Assembly: GCF_003704095.1 (NCBI RefSeq)
Contig: NW_020844967.1
Coordinates: forward strand, 1 to 64,000
Source of the DNA: Pocillopora damicornis
Lineage: Eukaryota
Reading direction: 5' to 3'
DNA length: 64,000 bases
The translations under genes and the position numbers were made by a program. The notes below the pieces were generated by a model. The model was not told where the DNA came from. It saw nothing but the letters and a program-made list of their open reading frames with translations, and did no database searches. This document shows positions 12,770 through 29,621 of the stretch, piece after piece. Every line of letters begins with the position of its first letter. Position 1 is the stretch's first letter.

Positions 12770-15176
12770 GACCAGTTGTGAACTGAAGAGGAATGTAAAA
12801 ACGGACTGTGAAACGATCCCTGAAAACCTCTATTGCACATCACTAATTACCGTATAAAATTTTATTTGCTGTTATTTTAAATTTATCTTCATTCAGCTAA
12901 AATTAAGCTTACCTCCTTCAAAAATGTTTGTAATCAGCAAGAACGATCGTATCTAATGCTCCTTGCCTTTAAATCTTATTTTAGTTTTATTTTTTTCTTT
13001 CCATTTTTTTTGGAGAAAGAGGTCAACTTGACACTATTTCAAGATCATTTAAAGATCAGTAGCTTCCATATCCTAACAGGTTTCGAAAATTTTTCCGATG
13101 CAAACTGACACTTCTACATTGTTAGGGGGAAGGTTATTGCCAGTGAGGTTAAAGAAGGTCACCTGTAAAACCCAACTGAGCGAAAAAAACTCCCCCTTTA
13201 TTCAAATTTACGAACAAAAAAAAACGTTAAGTATACCGTTTACCTCTTGTGCGTAGCTCGCGACTTAATCCCAACATAAGAGAACCCTTTTGATGATCTT
13301 ACCTCTTTATGTTTTTGGAGTCTTGAAAAGAGTTATGGACGAAAGGTCAAGTCCTGTTATGCCCCTGAAATGACAGTAGCAGAGTCCTGCATTATCAGAT
13401 ATTTATTGGAGGCAGACAGCGTACAAACATGACCTGCGCAAGGGAGGTGGGCTTGTCAAAGAGATTACGTCATGTAACTCAAACCCACGGATTCTTTTTG
13501 TGATTGGCTCCTTCAGTGAGCCCATGAAACAAAAAAGAAAAGATGCTCAGAGAATAAGGAAACTGTATCTTGATTGACATGAAATTATAACCAGATTTTG
13601 GATAAATTTTCTAGTGATTAAAGAAACGCTCAAATGAAGCGCAGTTTCTTGAATGGAAGCCCAGGGAATCAATTATTAACCCACATTGCCATAGAAGCAA
13701 ATGGCAAAAGAGGATTTACTGACATATGCTCTTTCGCATTTCGTCAACGGGCTAGATCAAATATTTTGTCTCCTACTGTCAAGTCAAGCAAATTATTGAC
13801 AAAAACCCACATTTCATAACATGTGGGATGTCTGAGTTGAGTAATAACTGTCAAACAGCGACCAACCAAGCGTGATATTTACCGAGCAGCTGGATTAAGT
13901 AATTCCTTGTAAAACATAATGCATCATTTATAAAAGGACAAAAATAGGAACAAAAGCAGACTGTGAAAGACTCAGATCTAAAACGATTTTTTCCGTGACA
14001 AGATAGAGAATATCCAAGATTACAGGTGAGGAGATGATGCATCCTAGTTTATAGATTTACCTTTAAAAATGTGTATTCAGAGGAGTGTAAAGACAATCCA
14101 CAACTACCTGTCGAATGGCGTCAGCCAAACGTGTGTATTTTAGCCCTCATATCTATAAACAAAGCTTTTAGCTTTTAGCTTTTAAGTTTTTGTTTAGTCT
14201 CGGCGCTAATTGATTAGTAACAGCGTCATAACGTGGCTGATCTCTGTTTCCGAAGCCCGAAACTAAATCCAACTCTTAAGGAATTTCTGTCAATTCTTAA
14301 AAGTCAATTTTAAAAAGCAAAAGTTTTAGCCTTGTATGACGAAATGTGCACTTAAGTGTGATTATAGTTTAGAGAAAAGTCAAAGGAAACCCATAGAATT
14401 CTATTTTATGGCTTTTCGTGAAAAGTATGGGCAGGTTCTCAAAGCCAAGCTTGATTAGAAAATAATAGCAAACTCGAGTTAATGAACTGAAGATAGAGAA
14501 ATTGAAAGGAGTAATCATAGAGTGTCCTCGAAGGCCTTTGGAGAGGATAATAAGGCCCAAAGATTTGCCACAAAGATGTGATTTCGTTTTCCGTGATAAC
14601 CAAAAATTACCTAGGACTGTATATCGAAAGAGCCATTTTCCTCACCAATTCAAAACAATCGTTTAAACATCAGTTCTGAGAATTTTCAAATGTTCTTCTA
14701 GAACATCCCTTCCTTGTTTCGCCATCATTGACTGCATGAATTTAAACCTCTACGCAATCAGTAGAATCGTATGTTAATATTTCCCAGTTTATTTTCACAG
14801 CTTACATAAAGGAAAGGGTTTTGTATTATTTTTACGAGAAAAACGAATAATAAGCTGAATTTGTAATTAGTCTCGCTAATTTCAAGCTGTTCACAGGTGT
14901 TAATTTAGTTATTGATTCACTAAAAGAAAATCTGTTTTCTATACAAAGAACACCAGCAATACATTTATATATCTTTGTTGTGAAAAATGTGCTAAGAAAT
15001 ACGAAAATGAACTTTGATTTATTCATACAAGAATACTTTTAAGTTCTAAACAAATAATAAGCAGATGAAATGTTTTGTTAATTTTACTCATAATGATAAA
15101 CAAACTGGCATACTCTTTTTTTCAGAGCGTTCTCTCTCGAACTTGTGCACTTCACCTGTAACAGCATTTCCGCAAA

Positions 15177-17437: not shown

Positions 17438-20265
17438 GTCTATCAGGATAATGAATAGACAGAATTGAAAATTGTAAAAATTCTAAGGTACAATAGCCAT
17501 AACGAATCGATTTCCGTCAGCCCTCGTGGCGATTTTCCCGTTTCCTTTCAAAAAGGCAGAAATCGCACACTGGAAGGCTAAAGCGAGTCAAAAGATAAAA
17601 TCGCCCCACCATCCGCGCGCGCCTCATGCTTCTCCACTTGGATTAAAGGAAACGGAAAGGACTGATACACGTGTTAATTTTTGAAAGATTCAGCTACTTT
17701 TTGACATTCTAAAATATATTATGAAGTTGATCGTCATGGTGAAAAAGAATTCGAACATATTGTCATGGGTTGTGGTAGGGATGAAAAGGTTTAGGTTAAA
17801 TGAACGGAATTCGAATCACAAACTTTCGATCTCGTGATCGAGTCTACGCCGGAAAGTTCTGTGAACGTAAGAGGTATAGCATCATATCGCGAGTTCGGAA
17901 GTTCTGAGGTTGAGTCCCCAAAGAGCAAACGCATTTTTTTCCTCATGAAAATTCTATACAAACGCACCAAACCTTTCTCCACACAGGTTACTGTCGCGAA
18001 ACCTACTTAATAAGCAAACTCAGAGTGTAGTTGATAGATTACGACAGCTACATACCTCATAGATTTTTAGCTGATTATTATTTATATAGCACTTTGGAAG
18101 AGTAAATAAATTCACAGTTTCCTATTTTTTAAAGGTGGAAAGTGCTTTTGTTAAGGACTGTCATGAGTTGGTACATGGAATGATATCTTCATTATAAAAT
18201 AAACGTGGCTATACACGTATTCTAGAATTATCACATCTACCCATTTACATGAGTGAGAGAACTGAAAATATAAGTCCTGATCATTTTGGAAGGTTTAGAA
18301 ATGTTTTCTAGACTTAGCATGCTTATTATGAACCAAGAAAGCCGCACAATGGGGATGAGAATTCCTAGTAAAATAAATGTCTAAAAAAAATTGTGTTGTA
18401 CCAATGTAATTTGAGTCTTGATTCGTATCAGAGAGCAAAGTCATTTTTTTGACAAAGCTGGAGAAACAGGAGATTGAAGATTCCACATAATTTTAAAGCC
18501 TCTTTTAAACTAATTTCTTTCAGCTACAGACATTGTTTAACTCAGTTTGCTATAAACCAAATGGAAAAAAGGCGTAAACAATGTTCTCCCTTATTTTGAT
18601 GAACAGCTAGGGAAGCTATTGTAGATGAAAGAATGGACCGTACTCACCAATATCTTTCTGTTTCCTTCGACTCCAACGTTTCCTTCTACAAAATCTGATG
18701 ATTAACTCGGATCGATTAAATATGAAATATAATCACTCGCACCCACAGAAGCTAGAACGCGTCTGATTGGCTAATTATGAAGTATTATGTCAACTGACAA
18801 TTGTGAATGAGTAAATAGACTAGTGATTGTTGACACCTTTTTATCAAAGGAGAACAACTTTTGTTTGGTGTCCAACACCTCCGCGTATAAACAAAATATT
18901 TGTAATCCAACACATCTGAACAAAAAATGTGTGTATCCCGGATTATTGAGGAGGTTTTTCAATAAGTTTTCATGAAATGCTAGTGGAAAAAAAGACAAGA
19001 CAAGATTCGATTTTTTCACTTATTCGTGTTGTTTATAAACCAAATGCAAAGAGTAATGCGAAGAATCAAATAATTGGGTAATTTCTAAAGCTCAAGAAAG
19101 TCTGCGGTGGCCAATTTACTTTATCAAATCATCTGATTAAACCATGTATTTTTTAAATACCCTCCGACACAGTAGCAGCACAGTTTCATTAGAAATTTAA
19201 CCCCTTCATTTTAATGATTAGGTGCCTCGTTGCTTTAAAATTAGCTTTAAGCTTGAAGCAGACATTTATTCGGAGAAGGCAATATGCTCCTCTCTTCAGG
19301 ACCACCAATGAGTTCGTCAATAGCAAATGAGGAGAATTTTCATGAAACAGGTGCTTTAACGCCTCAAGGTTAATCTACTATGCTATAATATTATACTATA
19401 AAATATGTTGGGGAGAATCTATCGAATAATAGAAGAGACTTTAGCCATGATAGAAATCTAAGACCACGTGATTCACATTTTGGATTGGATTTGAATATAC
19501 ATTGTTTCTTCTGAATATGTTATTTTTAGAGTTATTTGACACAATTTCCAACACTCAAACCGTGGTCAGAATCATCTAAGTAAAGCTTTGTCTTTTGATA
19601 AGTGGAATGTGCGGAAGGGGACAAGGTCAGGCTCACAAATCCTTGCTTACTGTATCCTGCGTCTTTCCGTCTCTTTCCAGCAGCCTTCCACTCACCCCTC
19701 TCCTCTTCGCCCCAGGTGTCCTGATACTCTCTTAAGTGTGCCTCAAGTTTGCGTTGGTCCGGTTGCAGGTAAAAAGGAAGGCTTTTACACACAAGTCAAT
19801 CATATTGAAATTNNNNNNNNNNNNNNNNNNNNNNNNNNNNNNNNNNNNNNNNNNNNNNNNNNNNNNNNNNNNNNNNNNNNNNNNNNNNNNNNNNNNNNNN
19901 NNNNNNNNNNNNTTTTTTTGGTCCTTTTTATCCCCTAAAGCGTCCCCCTCGATTAAGTGCCCACCTTTCAATAAGCGCCTCTACTTTTTGCCGAAGTTTT
20001 AAAGAGGTACCCTGGGTCTTATTCGAGGAAATACGATACTTTGTAATTACGTTGTAAATATAATAGTAATAACCTTAGTATTTTTATTTTAAAAGTAATT
20101 ACTTCCCCCTTCCGAAAAGAGATACTGACAGCGAAAACTATAATGCAACAGGTTAATTATTGTAAAGAAGGAGGAAGTAAGAGCGTTGTATGATAAAACG
20201 GACGATTAATTTTTACGTGCTTTTGTAGAGAAATACGATGGAGATGGAGAAATTATCCCTGGAAC

Positions 20266-22605
20266 TTAGTTATACATAGCTGAGCTTGCAGCAGCTGAAA
20301 GAAAGGAATTGCTTTGATCACAATTTTGAGGAATGTTGTTACTGTAAGGAAACTGTAGACTCCGTGGAGCCTCCCCGCAAATATTTTGTATAGGACCTGA
20401 ATTTTGAATGCAGTGTACCATGAGAGCTGGAGTGATACACCTTGCAACGTTCTTCTGAGACTCCTTCTTCAGCTTCATGCGGTACCGTTTGTTCTTGAAC
20501 CAGTTCTAGAACGAAACATACAGAGGTAAAGAACGGCACGATTAACCCAGAAGCCTATTCTGGATTTACTGATATAAAGGGCCTGGTTGCTTGGCCGGGC
20601 CTACACTTTGGCTTAACTTTTTCAGAAAATCGGTCATTCTAATTGACCGTTGTAATATTTCACGTGTCGTGGGAAATGACTGTTAACGATTATTTTCTGG
20701 AATTTCTAGGACGTTTAGTTGCGATGTTGCAGCTGTTCAACACACGGCTGTCGCCTGGGTTCCCATGCGGGACATACGGGAAATCCTAGATTTTGAGCAT
20801 GTGCAGTGGAAACATTCTTGAACCGCCAAGCTAAAGCCTGTCTATTTCATTCACTTTTTTTTTCTCGATTTTGAAGCGTCACTTTATTGTAAACATTCAG
20901 TTAGAATTTTCTCGAAGCCTTCTTGAAGGAGTTTGTATTAAAAGTTTTGATTTTACAGGTTGTCACCGTTCGCAACAACATTAACTTTAAAATTAAGCAT
21001 ATTTCTCAACTTGCTCCTCCTGGGGTTACATTTTTTAAAATCTTACCTGCAAAGCTGGTTTTGGTATCCCCAACACAGCAGCTACCTCCATACACTGGTT
21101 GGAAGTCAGGTACGGTGATCTAGCAAACAGTCGCTCCAACACGTTTTTCTGATAATCTGTCAGCCTCCCTCGTGTTCGCAGTCGTGGGTAAGACTTCGGT
21201 GCAGAGGCCTGGCTGTTTACATCAGCTACTTGAGCGGTATCGCCTGTGTTGATAAATTCTGCAGTTAACCATTTAACTATCAAGATCTTATCGGTTAATT
21301 CTTCCCTGTAACCACACATTTCCTTTGAGTTAGATACGAGAATTTGTTTATTTGAGTATTTTCATTACCTGTTTACTGGATGATGTATGAATATTATAAA
21401 GAGAAGTTACGTGTTAATCACCTCTGGAGTAGAACATCTTTCGTTTTTAAATTTCAAGTTACAATTTTTTCTCTTCCTCTTACATTCACGTGCAGCGCAC
21501 ATGATTTCACAAATTAGCCAATCATGTCAAAGAACTCCAACTTTGACATTGGAAAACTGACGTGGACATTTTTTCGCGTACTTTTTGTTTTTGCGGAGTT
21601 TAGTTTGTTGTTTTGAGCTTTCGTTCGCGTAAATTTGTTACTCCTTTGCTTGGAATTTTAAGACGTTTCGGAGTTTTTATTTTAGCTAAATATTGTGGTT
21701 CATTTAAAAAGTTTGATACGTATTTTCTACAAAGTTTGGACTCTAGTCTCTTTTTTCGTGGATGGATTTTTTACATCTGGGAGTTAAAGGGTTAACTTGA
21801 TTAGGGTAGATAATGAGTCACATCTAGTGGGTATTTCTTCGTTTTGTGGAGGAAAGGCTCTCGAAAAAGCGAAAGAAAATGTTAAAACGAGGAGAAAGAA
21901 AAGAATCAACCCAGTAGCTTCAGACATCGAGCATAATAATCGAGATGAGGTCATGGCGGATGCAAATAAATTCTCTCACCGCCATGCGCTTCTTTGCCTA
22001 TGGATTTATAAGTGAAATACACCTTAGAATCTAAAGTAAGTTTTCAATCATTTTAAAATCAAGGGTATTGCTAGTTTCCAGGTTTACATCGTCCTTCATT
22101 ATCATGTTGACGGATAACGAATTTCCCCACGTTTGGAAAAATAGCCGTACTTAAAGTTTACTTTTTTTAAGATACAAGACACGACCGTTTTGGTCGTGTT
22201 TATGAGGGAATCACAGGGTGGTAGAAATCCCCTGACTTATACCAAGAGAGAAAGTTTTTGGTTTTTTGAAAACATCTTGAAAATACAAAAACCATTCAAA
22301 CAAACCAAAAAACGTTGTAATAAACTCAACAAGTTAATTTAGCGTGTTGCTTTGATGGACTTCCACCTTGTTTGATCTGAAGTTTTGGTTCATACTTCAT
22401 ATTTTTTCCAACGCAAGCTCAAGCAATTGAATGTGAGCAACAGAATATTCGTTGGCAGGCAACACTTTAGAGTAAGCTTGCCGTGGATTCTGCACTTACC
22501 AGAAAAGGATCTCGGCGGTAACGGATTCAGCGGGTTGAACGGATCGACGTCAATTGCATGTGAATCTCTACCATTTTCTGGTACTGGTTCAAATAATTCT
22601 GCCAT
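20266..22605 (-). CDS. Divergent homeobox protein A (K50), ~170-180 aa
   Basis: Homeodomain RLRTRGRLTDYQKNVLERLFARSPYLTSNQCMEVAAVLGIPKPALQ|NWFKNKRYRMKLKK split by a phase-0 intron 20506-21046. Exons 20266-20505 and 21047-21243; probable first exon 22500-22605 (MAELFEP..., G|GTAAGT, phase 1). An alternative start at ATG 21319 is possible. Confidence 0.85.
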
Positions 22606-23893
22606 TGCGACCAAAAAATAACTGTTTCGGAATTTTAAAATTGAGAGTTGGTGTGCTCCCTATAATTGCTTGGAGAGAAATGTTTTGAAATTGCACAGTG
22701 GTGCAGTGGCTGATTTAAGCAAAATAATGACGTACCTAGGTATTTGTTTTGAAAATAAATAATGCGCTATTCGCTAAAGGATTGATTTTCTAGCGTAAGG
22801 TTGAAGCGTCATTGAAACCGAGTGAATATCTGTTCTGCATGTATAATGACATCATTAAAACAGCAATACGTCATTTAATCAATTTTGAAGTCAATAAGCG
22901 AATTATTATTAACAAACAGTTGGTTTCTCAGCCACGGATATTACAATCTGATCTCAGCATATCTTTTTCGGAAATATGTTGACGAAATGAATGCTAAAAG
23001 CTTTCTAACTTGTGAGATGAATCAGTTTCTTCTTGGATAAAAATTGGTTATCGCAGCATTGACGGTAAGCAACATTTACATATCGCATAGTTATTCAGTT
23101 TTATCAGTTTGTGCCGTGATTTTACGTAATAAACGAAACTAAATGAAATATCCATAATTAACACCTGATTCAATGGTGCTAATAATAACAATTTTGATTA
23201 ATTACGACGGATTTTGAAAGTGAAAAACAAACGTCAAGAATTCAGATCAAAACAACGAATTTACAGGGTAACCAACCAAATGTTTTGGTATCAGACAGGT
23301 TCGAGAGACCCAAAGTACCATAGATTTCCGAAATCGTGGTTTTAAAACGTAATTAGACTTAGTTCAGACTGGATCCCTTTGCCAACAATGCTATCATTTC
23401 AGACAAATATATCGTGTTTACACGTTCGTTTTAATATTGTTATGGCCATATTATTGCAATCATTGTTATGTATATTTTAATTTTTGTTTGCAAAACGAAG
23501 AGGTAGGTAATTAGGTAATTAAGGCTGATTAAAGTCTAATTAACCCATTCCTTATTATTCGAGGTAATTGATGCTTCGCTGAGTGTTATGTAACAGGTAA
23601 ATTATCCAATACGATTGGTACATACTTCGTATGAAATAATGCATGTTGTTATGTTGAGCAGTTAAAATGTCATTGGTAAGTTGAGTGGCTGATCTAACGA
23701 ATAAAAACAATTAGCTGCAAATTAGCGATTAATTAGCTATATGTGACCTCACAACAAAAATCAACGAATCAGCAAATGTTTACATTTATATTTTTGGAAT
23801 TAAGATATGGTATGAAATAACTTTACATAGCTGTAAAGCAAATGAATTGGAATCAGCCATCACCACAGGGAGACGGTTTGGTTAAGTTTAAAA

Positions 23894-24579
23894 ATGTCAA
23901 CTTCATCCTTTGTCGAAGAAATTGTCTCAATGGAAGGAAAAATGTTGGCTGATGAAATTGTAAAAGGTAGATTTACACAATGTGTTGTAGCAGTCCCCAT
24001 AAAGCGGATATTTACCAAAAAAAAAGAAGAGGACATCTATATATTTAGCGGAAAATGAAGTCCAGTCAAAACTCTCTGCTTCTTGAGTTATCGAACATGT
24101 CCAATAATTTAACATGATCATTAAATTATCGCATCGAATCGAATTAAAATCTGCATGGAAAAATTTGGTTGACTTGATTTCTATTCAAATTCAGTCGTAG
24201 GTACCAAGCCAGGCTGTAGTCTTAAGCCAAGTGGAAAACCGCGATCGAGGTTTAATTCTCATCAAAAACAAATTTTGGAGCAAGTGTTTCATCTGTCGCC
24301 ATACCTTGATTCCATTGAGCAGGCACAGATGGCCGAGACTTTGGGCATTCAAAAGACGGCGCTGCAGGTATTTATCGAAAAAAATTGAACATTTACTTTT
24401 TCTGATACTGACGCCCCGTTTGTTTTTGTCTTTAGAACTGGTTCAAAAACAAACGATATCGTCTAAAGAAGAGACAAGAAGCGGGCGATAAGGAAGTTTT
24501 ACCACAAAATGAAATAAATGACCACTGCAAGGTGGAACCAGGACACGAGGAAAGTTTCAGTTTTGCAAAATTTATTTAA
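23894..24579 (+). CDS. Divergent homeobox protein B (K50), paralogue of A, ~127 aa; absent from the ORF track
   Basis: Exons 23894-23966 (phase 1), 24201-24367 (or from 24195), 24436-24579. Homeodomain SGKPRSRFNSHQKQILEQVFHLSPYLDSIEQAQMAETLGIQKTALQ|NWFKNKRYRLKKRQ with the intron at the same 46/47 position as in A. Confidence 0.85.
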
Positions 24580-25239
24580 CAATGGCGAATCAGACGTCGA
24601 TAACTGCGAAGAGCTCTAGGAAGATTTGTCGGAATCTTCCTTTCCTTTCGCCTTGATACCATGGATATAAACGACGCGCTAATTTGACTAAAATGTTGTT
24701 AAATTGTACTCCAAGACCACCTTTCCTCTAGTTCTAATACTTTCCCAATTTACTTGACTTCTCCTGTGTCTTTAGACGAGTGTTAAATGCTTAAACTTGA
24801 ATGCTCATTTGTTTTAACGTTCAGAGTAATGTCGAAAGTAGTCCATGATTGCATCAGTTTTGCTCTACTTCGCTTAGTGATTGGTCCAGAAAAAGCGCTA
24901 CTTTTCTGGCCGGTATGTAGGACAAGTAGTTTAACTATAATTGTCTCTAAATGTTTTCCCTGACGACTTTTAGCCAAAATTTTAGGTAAACGGTTAAATC
25001 TCTTCACTTAGAAGATGTTTTTCGAAACATATTTTTTTTAAAACAGTAATATAGAATTATGATGAACAATGACCACATTGTGTATAACATAAAATGTTTA
25101 TTGATACAAATTAAAGCTAAGCTATTTATTCTCAGCAAATCTAATGAAACGTAGAAGAGGTAATAACTTGTGTGTAAAGTGGCTTGAACGGTTTTACAAT
25201 CATTAATATCACTTACTGAGCTGCTTGCATTGTATTCTT

Positions 25240-26618: not shown

Positions 26619-29600
26619 TCAGATTCTAACTTGATACCTATGACTACTTGCTTCATCTGGTCTCTCACTCGTTTGTGAAACACACGGCGCCGTATTATCT
26701 AAAAGCCAGTAGGTTTCCATTGCACCCTTGCCCTAAAAGGGAGATAAAAGAAAAACATTTTACTGTCAGTACTAAATAAGCCTGGTACATAAAATAAGAC
26801 GGTGTGAGATATGTGTTTTGTAAAGAGGTTTTTAGTTTAATTCGAGCAATGTTGGTGAGAGCGCTGACCAGGTCAGTGTGTTGATGTATTTGAAAGAAAA
26901 AAATTAATTGCTATCCAGTGCCTCTCTCCACCCATGAGAATACATTGGTACCGGGAAGGGTAATGAAATGCTGCGAGGGATTAGCATCCCAGCCAGTTGG
27001 GAGTAGTGATACTCTTCGTCGTTTCGCGCGTCAGATATTCTGACCAAAAAGACAGGGTCGAGACTCACCAGTAATTTAAACGCGTAATTTTGAGAAAAAT
27101 ATGCAAAAAAATTCTTCTATCGTTGTGTTACTTGTTCTCTTTAGGTTTTTTTTTTCCTTTCCACAGGGCGAACTAAAAAGATTGTGCATGAGGATTCAGT
27201 CCCAGGTCTTATTCCTCACTTGACCCTATATAACAATGGCAAAAATGTCATACTTTGACGTCAACTAATCCTCTGAATTCCAGATGATAACCATCGATAA
27301 ATTCCAGCATGTCCTTTGTATCTTTGCTCACATGGATTTTCTGGGCTGAAATGTGAAGTATTTGGGTTTTAAATAATCAACGATCTTTGTAAATTTTTTT
27401 AACGATTTGTAAATAAACAGCAAGCAAACAAACAAACAAACGAAACACAAATTGGAGAAATCCCTCAGAGCAAGGACGAACTCCACCATCCTACTCAACA
27501 TAAATAAGAAAAAAAAAGAATAGATTCCATTTGTTTTTCATGTATGCATATCACCAATGCAAGTCAGGCCGCGCTGAACTGAATTGAACCCGGGGCTCTA
27601 TAAGTGTAACTATACATTTTTTATGTTGACAAAAATTTTGGAACAAGACTTACGCAATCCAGTTGTCTGCATTCTGGATGCGGTGTTCACAGTGTCCCCA
27701 AACAAACAATAGCGAGGCATTTTGTTCCCTACAACTCCTGCCGCGCAAGGACCTGGAAATAAATGAGTGAAGAAGTTAACAAAAATAATATAGAATTGCA
27801 AAAAATGAAAGATTTTGTCTTCCTTTTTAATGAGGCGCAGACTAAATTCACGAAATAATAGAAGAACGAATGGAAGTATACCATTCAATATATACTTAAA
27901 GCTAATAAAATTTAAATCTGATACATCAAATTTTATTGCCAATTATTGTTCGTCTGTGATGATTAAAAGTATCTACGAAATATAAGAAATATGAAAAAAT
28001 GATTGTATGCGAAGAATGCAGACATTTAAAATAACTATAACGAAACCGGCAACGGGGTTACCTCCAGAAATCCAAGAGATAACTTCAAAAACTCACCCGT
28101 GTGTATACCTATTCTTACACTGAGATCTCTTCCGTCATCGGAGCCAAAATGAACACTTTTCATGAGCTCCACCAGATGAAGAGCCATCAGGGACACCTCA
28201 GTGACGTGATTGTGCCCATTTTTCTCTGGTAGGCCTGATACAACCATGTAGGCGTCACCGATCGTCTCCACCTTATAGACATCGTATTTGTCGATGTGGT
28301 TGTCAAAGATTCCATAAAGTTGGTTCAACATGTGGGTCACCTCCATGGGTGAGATACTGGCACAGATTTGCGTGAAGTCCACGATATCACTGAAAAAGAC
28401 AGTCACGCTTTCAAACTGCTCTGCTTTGACAGTCTGCCCACCCTTGAGCTGTTCGGCGACAGGATACGGCAGCATTTGGTAAAGAAGACAATCTGCTCTA
28501 TGTTTTTCTTCCTTCAGCTGTTTCGTTGTTTGATGAAGTTTGTTCGCGTATCTTTGGATCGTGTAAACAATGAACACAAAGCAGGGCATAATCAACAGAA
28601 CGAAGGCAAAAACTGAATACTTTAGTATCGAGTCCTTCTCTGCTGAGCTTACATTCTCCTTAAGTTTGTCAAGGATCAGTGTCCCGACCTCCTTTTGAAC
28701 TTTAAGTAATGCATTTATGTAAACAGTCATGATATCAAACCACTCTACTCCCAACTCCACTGACGCGTTTTGCTTTTTATTGCCTAAGATAACTTTTCTT
28801 TTTTGCTCCACAGTAACCAAAATCGTCCTGTTAGAAGCTTCAACAGATTTATTATAAATTGTTTTAATCTCCGGCACAAGTTGCATGCTCGTCTGTAACT
28901 TGTCCTGTCCCAGCTGATTCTGCTTTGCATACCAGAGTAAATCATTTGTATCTTGAAAATATCCTCGACTGAAATATGAACCTCCAAGAGCTCGCTCAAT
29001 ACCAGTTCTTTCTTTGCCAATAAGGAGCATTTGGTACCCGATGTAGTCCGACAGAATGTCTTGGTCTGTTTGCTGGACGTTGCGGAAAGACCAATCAAAC
29101 AGGTTTGTAATTATTTGTGTGTAAAACGTGATTTCTTCTTTGATTGTGCTGTTATTGGAAGGGTGAGACTGACGATGGTTATTTACCAGCGCCAGAAATG
29201 TCTCCAGGCTGTTAAAATTATACGTTTCACGATTATCTTGTGGCCACCTGGCGAGATTTTGGGCCACCTCATCAGTTTCCTCTGCAGCTTCTAACACCCG
29301 AGGCCATATTCCCTGTTGTGGATCTGAACTGAAGTGTAAAACTCTTGTTCCTCGCTCAATTTGCAGTCTGTGAATGAGGCCCGCGACTTCGATGCTCAGG
29401 TTTATGCTAGCTTGCAATGTTTTGGTTTTTGTAGTGACCTGACTGGCTTTTAAAGCGTCTAGTATTGTAAGAATCGTCAGACCAGTCATGGCTATCAAGC
29501 TCACAACTACCATGGTCGCCATTTGAGTTCTTCTTCCAGTTCGAGTGATACTTTTTGGTGTTGATATTTTATTTTCCAGTCTCAAGTCCAGGATCGGCTC

Positions 29601-29621
29601 TACTTGTCTCGTTTTCTTCAT
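26619..29621 (-). CDS. NIT-domain membrane guanylyl cyclase (NIT-GC), ~609 aa, 4 coding exons
   Basis: Exons 28097-29621, 27654-27752, 27254-27345, 26619-26732. Order: TM1 ([17 protein letters not shown]), NIT signatures IHRLQIERG and [11 protein letters not shown]2 ([19 protein letters not shown]), LLYQMLP helix, class III cyclase with GTP-specifying [10 protein letters not shown] and [17 protein letters not shown], then [11 protein letters not shown]. Confidence 0.9.

Follow-up and report, generated by a model that had tools for sequence, protein, structure and literature searches.

The first 64,000 nucleotides of contig NW_020844967.1 of the stony coral Pocillopora damicornis (hereafter the window) contain two divergently transcribed homeobox genes, A on the minus strand and B on the plus strand. 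The locus raises the question of which homeobox family genes with the recognition-helix motif NWFKNKRYR belong to, and whether they are functional genes. An earlier note, made from the letters of the window alone, had described them as a head-to-head pair of orphan homeobox genes with an invariant helix 3. The analysis presented here suggests, with a probability of about 0.8, that A and B are old paralogues in a small, fast-evolving, lineage-restricted family of homeobox genes with lysine at homeodomain position 50 (K50), which have a gene structure of the PRD type and are of uncertain class.

Homeodomains and gene models

The homeodomains of A and B comprise 60 residues each, with SPYL at positions 23–26 and NWFKNKRYR at positions 47–55; the structural core residues L16, F20, W48, F49, N51 and R53 are all present. 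Given domains of this length, the three-residue insertion of TALE homeodomains between helices 1 and 2 is absent. Counting back from W48, F49, N51 and R53 places an intron between homeodomain codons 46 and 47 of either gene. The Pfam homeobox model PF00046 matches the product of the second exon of both genes above its cut-off of 22.9 bits (Table 1), and no Pfam domain besides the homeodomain, including OAR, was found in any exon of A and B or in the spliced orthologues described below. Translations and Pfam matches thus confirm the two paralogues with the same SPYL motif, the same ALQ|NWFKNKRYR junction and the same intron position that the earlier note had reported.

A degenerate pattern back-translated from NWFKNKRY occurs exactly twice in the genome of 234 Mb and not once in the reversed control; the resemblance is therefore not due to chance, and the genome holds only two such genes. 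The exon-2 products are 39% identical in pairwise comparison (45% in the genome search match), and a genome search with exon 2 of gene B returned exon 2 of gene A as best non-self match, in agreement with the proposal that the two are each other's closest paralogues in the genome. The next match, L003, was rejected as a family member, being an ordinary NK-like gene. A genome search with exon 3 of gene A found only itself, its tail being too diverged. When exon 2 of gene A was used in word-based searches of proteins, only an unspliced open reading frame (ORF) from Logan contigs was retrieved; the length window of these searches and the lack of shared 5-mers make them blind to the family.

Contigs of four public sequencing runs were aligned to positions 20000–24800; such contigs give no expression levels. 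They are 96–99% identical to the window and therefore derive from the same or a closely related coral. One 262-nt contig of run X3 has both introns of gene A spliced out, with joints at 20505|21047 and 21242|22499 (cut +1). Both joints conform to GT–AG on the minus strand, 541 and 1256 nt being skipped, and 41 nt of the contig lie on the exon-1 side. Gene A therefore has three exons; its product comprises about 180 amino acids if, as we infer, the ATG at 22605–22603 is the start codon. The ATG at 21319, which a plain ORF reading would take as the start, was discarded as intronic, because the X3 contig links the upstream exon ending at 22500 to 21243. The segment 20266–24579, to which the pair had been assigned, does hold all of gene A, but the gene model proposed with it was incomplete and lacked the upstream exon at 22605–22500.

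Gene B likewise has three exons, and its product comprises about 129 amino acids according to contig joints and translation. In a 1114-nt contig of the polyA run X6, positions 23887–23966, 24195–24367 and the sequence from 24436 onward are joined, both introns having been removed; exon 1, of which the alignment covers 23887–23964, is connected to 24193 (cut +2, GT..AG). The joint 24365|24434 (cut +2, 68 nt skipped) was found in contigs of X6 and of the oligo-dT run X10, with 173–174 nt on its shorter side. Since the contigs of both runs reach 24800 and further, the 3' untranslated region of gene B extends beyond that position. In X10 the 68-nt intron is removed but other 5' exons are used (Table 1); this isoform would either be non-coding or depend on translation from an internal or non-AUG start. 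A 75-residue Logan ORF (P0016) that begins inside helix 1 probably derives from an X10-like transcript. The call for junction support is answered by the contigs of X3, X6 and X10, in which both homeobox introns are removed: both genes are spliced as predicted, in contigs of runs filed or guessed as RNA.

Table 1. Features of genes A and B and of their surroundings, in window positions
Feature	Position	Strand	Description and evidence
Gene A exon 1, coding part	22500..22605	-	putative ATG at 22605-22603, then 35 codons and 1 nt; ORF, GTAAGT donor, X3 joint
Gene A intron 1	21244..22499	-	1256 nt, phase 1; X3 contig joint; repeat inside at about 21288-21931
Gene A exon 2	21047..21243	-	homeodomain residues 1-46 at 21184-21047, last residues ALQ; PF00046 29.5 bits; joints on both sides
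Gene A intron 2	20506..21046	-	541 nt, GT-AG, between homeodomain codons 46 and 47; joint 20505|21047 (CT..AC on the plus strand)
Gene A exon 3	20266..20505	-	residues 47-60 (NWFKNKRYRMKLKK) at 20505-20464, 65-residue tail, stop at 20266
Intergenic region between the start codons of A and B	22606..23893	.	about 1.3 kb; putative shared divergent promoter region (from gene-model geometry); alternative 5' exons of gene B lie here too
Further gene B 5' exon, upstream of 23563	ends 23064	+	X10 loose end, letters match 23051-23064
Gene B alternative 5' exon	23563..23596	+	X10 joint 23593|24192 (cut +3); without in-frame ATG; in-frame TGA at 23569-23571
Gene B exon 1, coding part	23894..23966	+	ATG at 23894, 24 codons and 1 nt; ORF and X6 contig
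Gene B exon 2	24195..24367	+	homeodomain residues 1-46 at 24230-24367, last residues ALQ; PF00046 32.6 bits; contig joints
Gene B homeobox intron	24368..24435	+	68 nt, GT-AG, between homeodomain codons 46 and 47; X6 and X10 joint
Gene B exon 3, coding part	24436..24579	+	residues 47-60 (NWFKNKRYRLKKRQ), 33-residue tail, stop at 24579
NIT-HNOBA-guanylate cyclase gene	27613..29621	-	Pfam; neighbour, synteny marker only, outside the finding

Within intron 1 of gene A, dozens of contigs from all four runs stack over positions 21288–21931 at 90–95% identity, with summed depths in the hundreds and many internal joints and loose ends. This segment probably belongs to a mobile element or dispersed repeat that is transcribed.

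Relatives in stony corals and a sea anemone

A profile of both exon-2 products was searched against 1.84 billion representative proteins (E up to 0.001) and gave 64 matches, most of the weaker ones being BarH-like. Two of the matches are spliced orthologues of gene A: XP_020625099.1 of Orbicella faveolata (P0006; 153 amino acids), annotated as "homeobox protein vent1-like", and a hypothetical protein of Oculina patagonica (P0085), which score 54.5 and 51.3 bits, respectively, against PF00046. The helix 3 of the Orbicella protein, NWFKNKRYRLRLKK, recurs in that of Oculina; both proteins carry NWFKNKRYRLRLK, and the tail encoded by exon 3 of gene A can be aligned with both, i.e. across genera. 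The other family matches include numerous unspliced ORFs that correspond to exon 2 or exon 3, from contigs of Logan, ENA, Tara and JGI. The term "orphan" does not apply to the pair, given these orthologues in Orbicella, Oculina and other coral assemblies, and a sister gene in a sea anemone that was published in 2006 with the same intron.

The coral contigs L007, L056, L054, L009, L008 and L055 each have the two-exon homeobox structure. Helix 3 reads NWFKNKRYRLKKK in L007 and, with R50, NWFRNKRYRQKQK in L056; the copies on L009 have NWFRNKRYRSKKRK, also with R50 (NWFRNKRYR), and end in a stop codon shortly after the homeodomain, i.e. in a truncated tail. A more distant type with S47 and the helix 3 SWFKNRRFKWRK is represented by L008 and L055. 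All copies examined have intact frames with canonical splice sites. As the variants among the relatives concern positions 47 and 50, the constant part of the motif is W-F-x-N-K-R-Y-R. The "invariant helix 3" of the earlier note thus holds between A and B, and among the A-type orthologues, including those of Orbicella and Oculina, in which helix 3 is unchanged, but not elsewhere in the family, where R50, K47 and T47 occur.

A NIT-HNOBA-guanylate cyclase gene adjoins the locus in three corals, next to the pair in the window, the B-type copies on L009 and the A-type gene of Oculina (L011); from this common neighbour, the locus is syntenic. Within 10 kb, Orbicella and Oculina have only the A-type gene. 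The head-to-head arrangement, which is real in the window with start codons about 1.3 kb apart, is therefore not general. On L009 (ENA ERZ25067556), positions 3675–12908 hold three near-identical tandem B-type copies (dS about 0.06) upstream of the NIT-guanylate cyclase gene. Four further profile matches (P0002, P0005, P0008 and P0030) are long proteins with 5–13 near-identical repeats of one homeodomain-containing unit, and look like read-through of tandem arrays or assembly artefacts rather than true multi-homeodomain proteins.

Outside the corals, the profile matched a 60-residue UniParc entry (P0043), which has the sequence of Nv_151, a row of the alignment file that accompanies Ryan et al. 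2006 (PMC1779571). In the table of that study the Nematostella gene, NVHD151, appears as "DMBXd (151)" (DQ301956) in the PRD class, with intron position 139 and a support of 0.02. Its homeodomain is 45% identical to the Orbicella A-type domain and about 50% identical to a second divergent pair of the P. damicornis genome, on contig C1951. NVHD151 shares with A and B the intron at nucleotide 139 (codons 46/47), K50, K52 and Y54 within WFKNKRYK (its helix 3 reads WFKNKRYKLR), as well as a loop other than YPD (SSAYI), but differs in having T or V instead of N at position 47, K55 instead of R55, and AYI instead of PYL. Residue 47 is given as T in UniParc and as V in additional file 12 of PMC1779571; V is the product of reading through the GT of the intron, and the published alignment may therefore carry an intron-derived residue. 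A reciprocal search of the genome with NVHD151 was discarded as uninformative, since the match spans 57 residues in intronless genes but only 46 in split ones, which makes the scores not comparable.

Among 111 PRD homeodomains, K52 was noticed only in DMBXd and one Rx allele (Mazza et al. 2010, PMC2938728). Our literature search on NVHD151/DMBXd found no paper naming the gene beyond this one and PMC1779571, and no expression or function; the helix-3 string, searched for in full texts, turned up in no paper and occurs only in the supplement of PMC1779571. The name "vent1-like" was met once, in PMC10946136, for a Nematostella gene of early apical tuft cells, and we take the mention as a lead only. 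As the family occurs in stony corals and in a sea anemone, it is at least Hexacorallia-wide; the anthozoan restriction that had been suggested agrees with these matches, relatives having been found only in corals and a sea anemone.

Phylogeny, class membership and selection

The genome of P. damicornis contains about 150 matches to the Pfam homeobox model. In about 50 of them the match breaks off at profile position 46, which is the mark of a 46/47 intron, and the scores of A and B rank among the lowest in this set. Of 40 such loci examined, 38 have GT right after codon 46, and the downstream exon was located for 35. All of these 35 PRD genes have V or I at position 47; they have A54 and mostly a Y-P-D loop, with FPG, YPG, YPN or YPT in a few, and R52 is the rule, K52 occurring in two Otx copies only. 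A and B, with N47, K52, Y54 and SPYL, differ from them at each of these points. The loci include one Gsc and one Pitx gene. A tandem array of eight canonical Dmbx genes lies at about 555–623 kb of contig C37 (L028, L031, L037–L039, L041, L049 and L053), all with a THYPDV loop and a VWFKNRRAK[FY]RK helix, and a cluster of five Otx genes, two of which carry K52 (VWFKNKRAK), at about 1.24–1.31 Mb of contig C1899. The C1951 pair mentioned above (L012 and L013, about 497.8–506.5 kb) has K50, a 46/47 intron, T47, the helix TWFKNRRVKWRK, and the loops SPFL and SQYI.

Maximum-likelihood trees were calculated from 72 and 74 homeodomains, with 60 columns each. The rows were the 35 own-genome genes with a 46/47 intron, the C1951 pair, A, B, all relatives, NVHD151 and about 25 search-match domains (BarH-, Lbx-, Tlx-, Hox- and DUX-like). 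Three loci without a located downstream exon, two with another intron position and three truncated P0005 repeats were left out, as was, from the second tree only, the long-branch row P0026. The genes with the NKRYR motif form one group (support 87/95 in the first and 93/97 in the second tree), with NVHD151 as its sister (100/90 and 97/84); together with the S47 type and the C1951 pair they constitute a starred clade (100/96, then 100/95). Within the NKRYR group, gene B, the L009 copies, L007, L056 and L054 make up a starred B lineage (100/98), the A type of the window, Orbicella and Oculina being basal. Canonical Dmbx (98/98; 100/95), Otx (96/97) and the 13 sampled ANTP rows (95/89) form separate clades.

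K50, the 46/47 intron and the listing of NVHD151 under DMBX (PMC1779571) would be compatible with A and B being plain divergent DMBX members of the PRD class, as the name "DMBXd" implies, and joining the clade to the eight canonical Dmbx genes was not rejected by the approximately unbiased (AU) test (p = 0.127). The constrained tree is nevertheless 14.5 log-likelihood units worse, and the eight genes on C37 form their starred clade far from A and B. The THYPDV loop and VWFKNRRAK[FY]RK helix present in all eight are missing from A and B, as are an OAR or any other additional domain, and the published placement of NVHD151 itself had a support of 0.02. Membership in DMBX thus seems improbable.

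Other classes were compared by their diagnostic features. According to PMC1779571, the intron position of A and B (nucleotide 139) is shared by 31 of 33 PRD-class homeoboxes of Nematostella, in which no ANTP homeobox is interrupted; the x-Y-P-D loop and the V or I at position 47 of the PRD class are replaced by SPYL and N47. A SIX domain N-terminal to the homeodomain, as in the SINE/SIX class, is lacking, and the proteins are also too short for one. Members of the NK2 family combine Y54 with Q50 and have TN and NK2-specific domains. A and B have Y54 with K at position 50, and no further conserved domain was seen, TN and NK2-SD having been judged without a profile. Grouping with ANTP/NKL genes was not recovered, the clade of 13 ANTP rows excluding the family, which is a weak test given the small ANTP sample, drawn from unnamed search matches. 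In a PDB search with the Orbicella protein, the best single-domain scores were 30–33 bits, to ZFHX3, Ubx, Scr, Ftz and Dlx5. No named family thus appears close to A and B, the best PDB matches coming from mixed classes. The earlier statement that they fit no canonical family is upheld by these scores and by the trees, in which they belong neither to canonical Dmbx or Otx nor to the sampled ANTP clade.

Selection was estimated from Nei-Gojobori counts on both homeodomain blocks. Where synonymous sites are not saturated, the ratio of nonsynonymous to synonymous divergence (dN/dS) lies between 0.11 and 0.30, with 0.11 for Orbicella versus Oculina, 0.26 for gene A of the window versus Oculina, and 0.22–0.27 for gene B versus the L009 copies. 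These values show purifying selection on both homeodomains, in agreement with the selection that the earlier note had postulated. The comparison of A with B is saturated at synonymous sites; helix 3 has nine identical residues, although its coding block differs at 6.5 of 7.0 synonymous sites. This identity has therefore been kept by purifying selection, and the saturation rules out recent gene conversion as its source. Overall, the constraint on A and B looks real but looser than that on classical homeobox families.

Several observations weigh against the reading of A and B as old paralogues in a family with PRD-type gene structure. The free tree places the clade outside the canonical PRD cluster (44 rows; split 91/91), which holds the 46/47-intron genes of the genome, and trees of 60 columns lack power for deep nodes or class membership. 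In PDB, helices 1 and 2 (the exon-2 products) match ANTP-type En, Cdx, Dlx and BarH domains best, at only 21–25 bits. A dN/dS of 0.2–0.3 is high for a homeodomain and corresponds to moderate constraint. In B-lineage genes elsewhere, R has replaced K50 and K has replaced N47; the latter change occurs in L054, with the helix 3 KWFKNKRYRLRKK and a degenerate N-terminal arm, given which part of the family may be decaying. Splicing of gene A is seen in a single contig, at a depth of 2.6, from a run that is only guessed to be RNA, and the gene B isoform with the X10 5' exons has no in-frame ATG before the homeodomain exon. The taxonomic range, corals and one sea anemone, is set by database content, and the DNA binding and function of all family members are predictions.

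Some of these points bear on the alternative that A and B are ANTP-class NK-like genes (Vent- or BarH-like, in line with the automatic NCBI name "vent1-like") that acquired K50 and the 46/47 intron secondarily. The best PDB matches of the exon-2 products (En, Cdx, Dlx and BarHL2), the BarH-like majority of the weaker profile matches, the x-x-Y-L motif with L26, and the location of the clade on the ANTP side of the 91/91 split in the midpoint-rooted tree are in its favour, but all scores to ANTP domains are low, none exceeding 33 bits, and A and B lie outside the starred clade of the 13 sampled ANTP rows. Moreover, Nematostella ANTP homeoboxes are never interrupted by an intron, the intron at nucleotide 139 being nearly exclusive to the PRD class (PMC1779571), and the AU test did not reject joining the clade to all 46/47-intron genes of the genome (p = 0.063). 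An origin from NK-like genes is accordingly unlikely.

Other points would be expected if one or both genes were decaying duplicates, expressed pseudogenes without protein function: helices 1 and 2 are poorly conserved, the dN/dS is high for a homeobox, gene B is missing from the Orbicella and Oculina loci, B-lineage copies elsewhere show truncated tails, R50 or a degenerate N-terminal arm, and one isoform of gene B lacks an in-frame ATG. We regard decay as very unlikely, in view of the intact frames and canonical splice sites in every copy examined, spliced contigs in several independent studies, dN/dS values clearly below 1, a helix 3 kept across saturated synonymous divergence, and the retention of all structural core residues.

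Predicted DNA recognition and comparison with known homeobox genes

If A and B are old paralogues in a K50 family with PRD-type gene structure, their helices 1 and 2 would have drifted from the PRD-type YPD pattern to SPYL, and W-F-[KR]-N-K-R-Y-R would be the hallmark of the recognition helix. From general homeodomain structure, the proteins are predicted to be sequence-specific DNA-binding transcription factors, acting as monomers or cooperatively. As in all solved homeodomains, N51, R53, K50, residue 47 and Y54 would point into the major groove. Through K50 the proteins would favour C-rich bases 3' of the core, as bicoid and Otx do, a preference altered by N47 and Y54; none of the solved homeodomains matched here has the 47/50/54 combination of A and B. 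The divergent arrangement may permit shared regulation of the two genes.

A more far-reaching proposal is that the NKRYR group and NVHD151 constitute a hexacorallian- or cnidarian-specific family, neither Dmbx nor bilaterian, in which the residue combination N/T47+K50+K52+Y54 specifies a DNA motif that no characterised homeodomain binds, and that it marks a cnidarian-specific cell type or larval territory; we put this forward as a speculative possibility, and rather doubt it. Cnidarian-restricted homeobox families are candidates for a role in lineage-specific cell types and body-plan features, and to our knowledge functional data from corals are missing for almost all of them. NVHD151, listed since 2006 as a sixth Nematostella "Dmbx", falls in a separate conserved clade that has coral members, expressed and under selection, and its own recognition-helix signature, and automatic names such as "vent1-like" and "DMBXd" are misleading as to family affinities. 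The Orbicella orthologue was already present in RefSeq, and the anemone sister gene had been catalogued for two decades and its K52 remarked on; new are the distinctness of the clade from Dmbx, its coral members, and the evidence for splicing and selection. Nothing is overturned by these results, divergent tandem PRD-like genes being common in cnidarians.

By analogy only, A and B resemble mammalian Obox, DPRX and other ETCHbox genes, which evolve fast within one lineage, encode short proteins with the homeodomain as sole domain, and occur as linked or tandem duplicates. The nearest ESM Atlas clusters are named "Oocyte-specific homeobox 6" (0.88) and "divergent paired-related homeobox" (0.86); both values are below the trust level of 0.9, and the clusters serve as leads only. 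Beyond the homeodomain there is no evidence of descent common to these genes and A/B. With the SIX class, A and B share the N-W-F-K-N string (N47, K50), but SIX/sine oculis proteins differ in the loop and the helix 1–2 pattern, and the A and B proteins of 129–180 amino acids contain no SIX domain. Canonical Dmbx, Otx, Gsc and Pitx genes are similar to A and B in K50, in the 46/47 intron found in cnidarians and in tandem duplication; the differences lie at position 47, where they have V or I instead of N, at position 54 (A instead of Y) and in the loop, which is YPD (positions 25–27) and not SPYL. R52 is present in all eight Dmbx genes, in Gsc, in Pitx and in three of the five Otx genes, as opposed to K52 in A and B, which the other two Otx genes also have. 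The C1951 pair and the S47 type (L008 and L055) belong to the same starred clade as A and B and resemble them in K50, in the 46/47 intron and in a loop of the form S-[PQ]-[FY]-[LI], but with TWFKNRRVKWRK or SWFKNRRFKWRK as helix 3, R52, and V or F at position 54, they are much nearer to the ordinary PRD K50 pattern.

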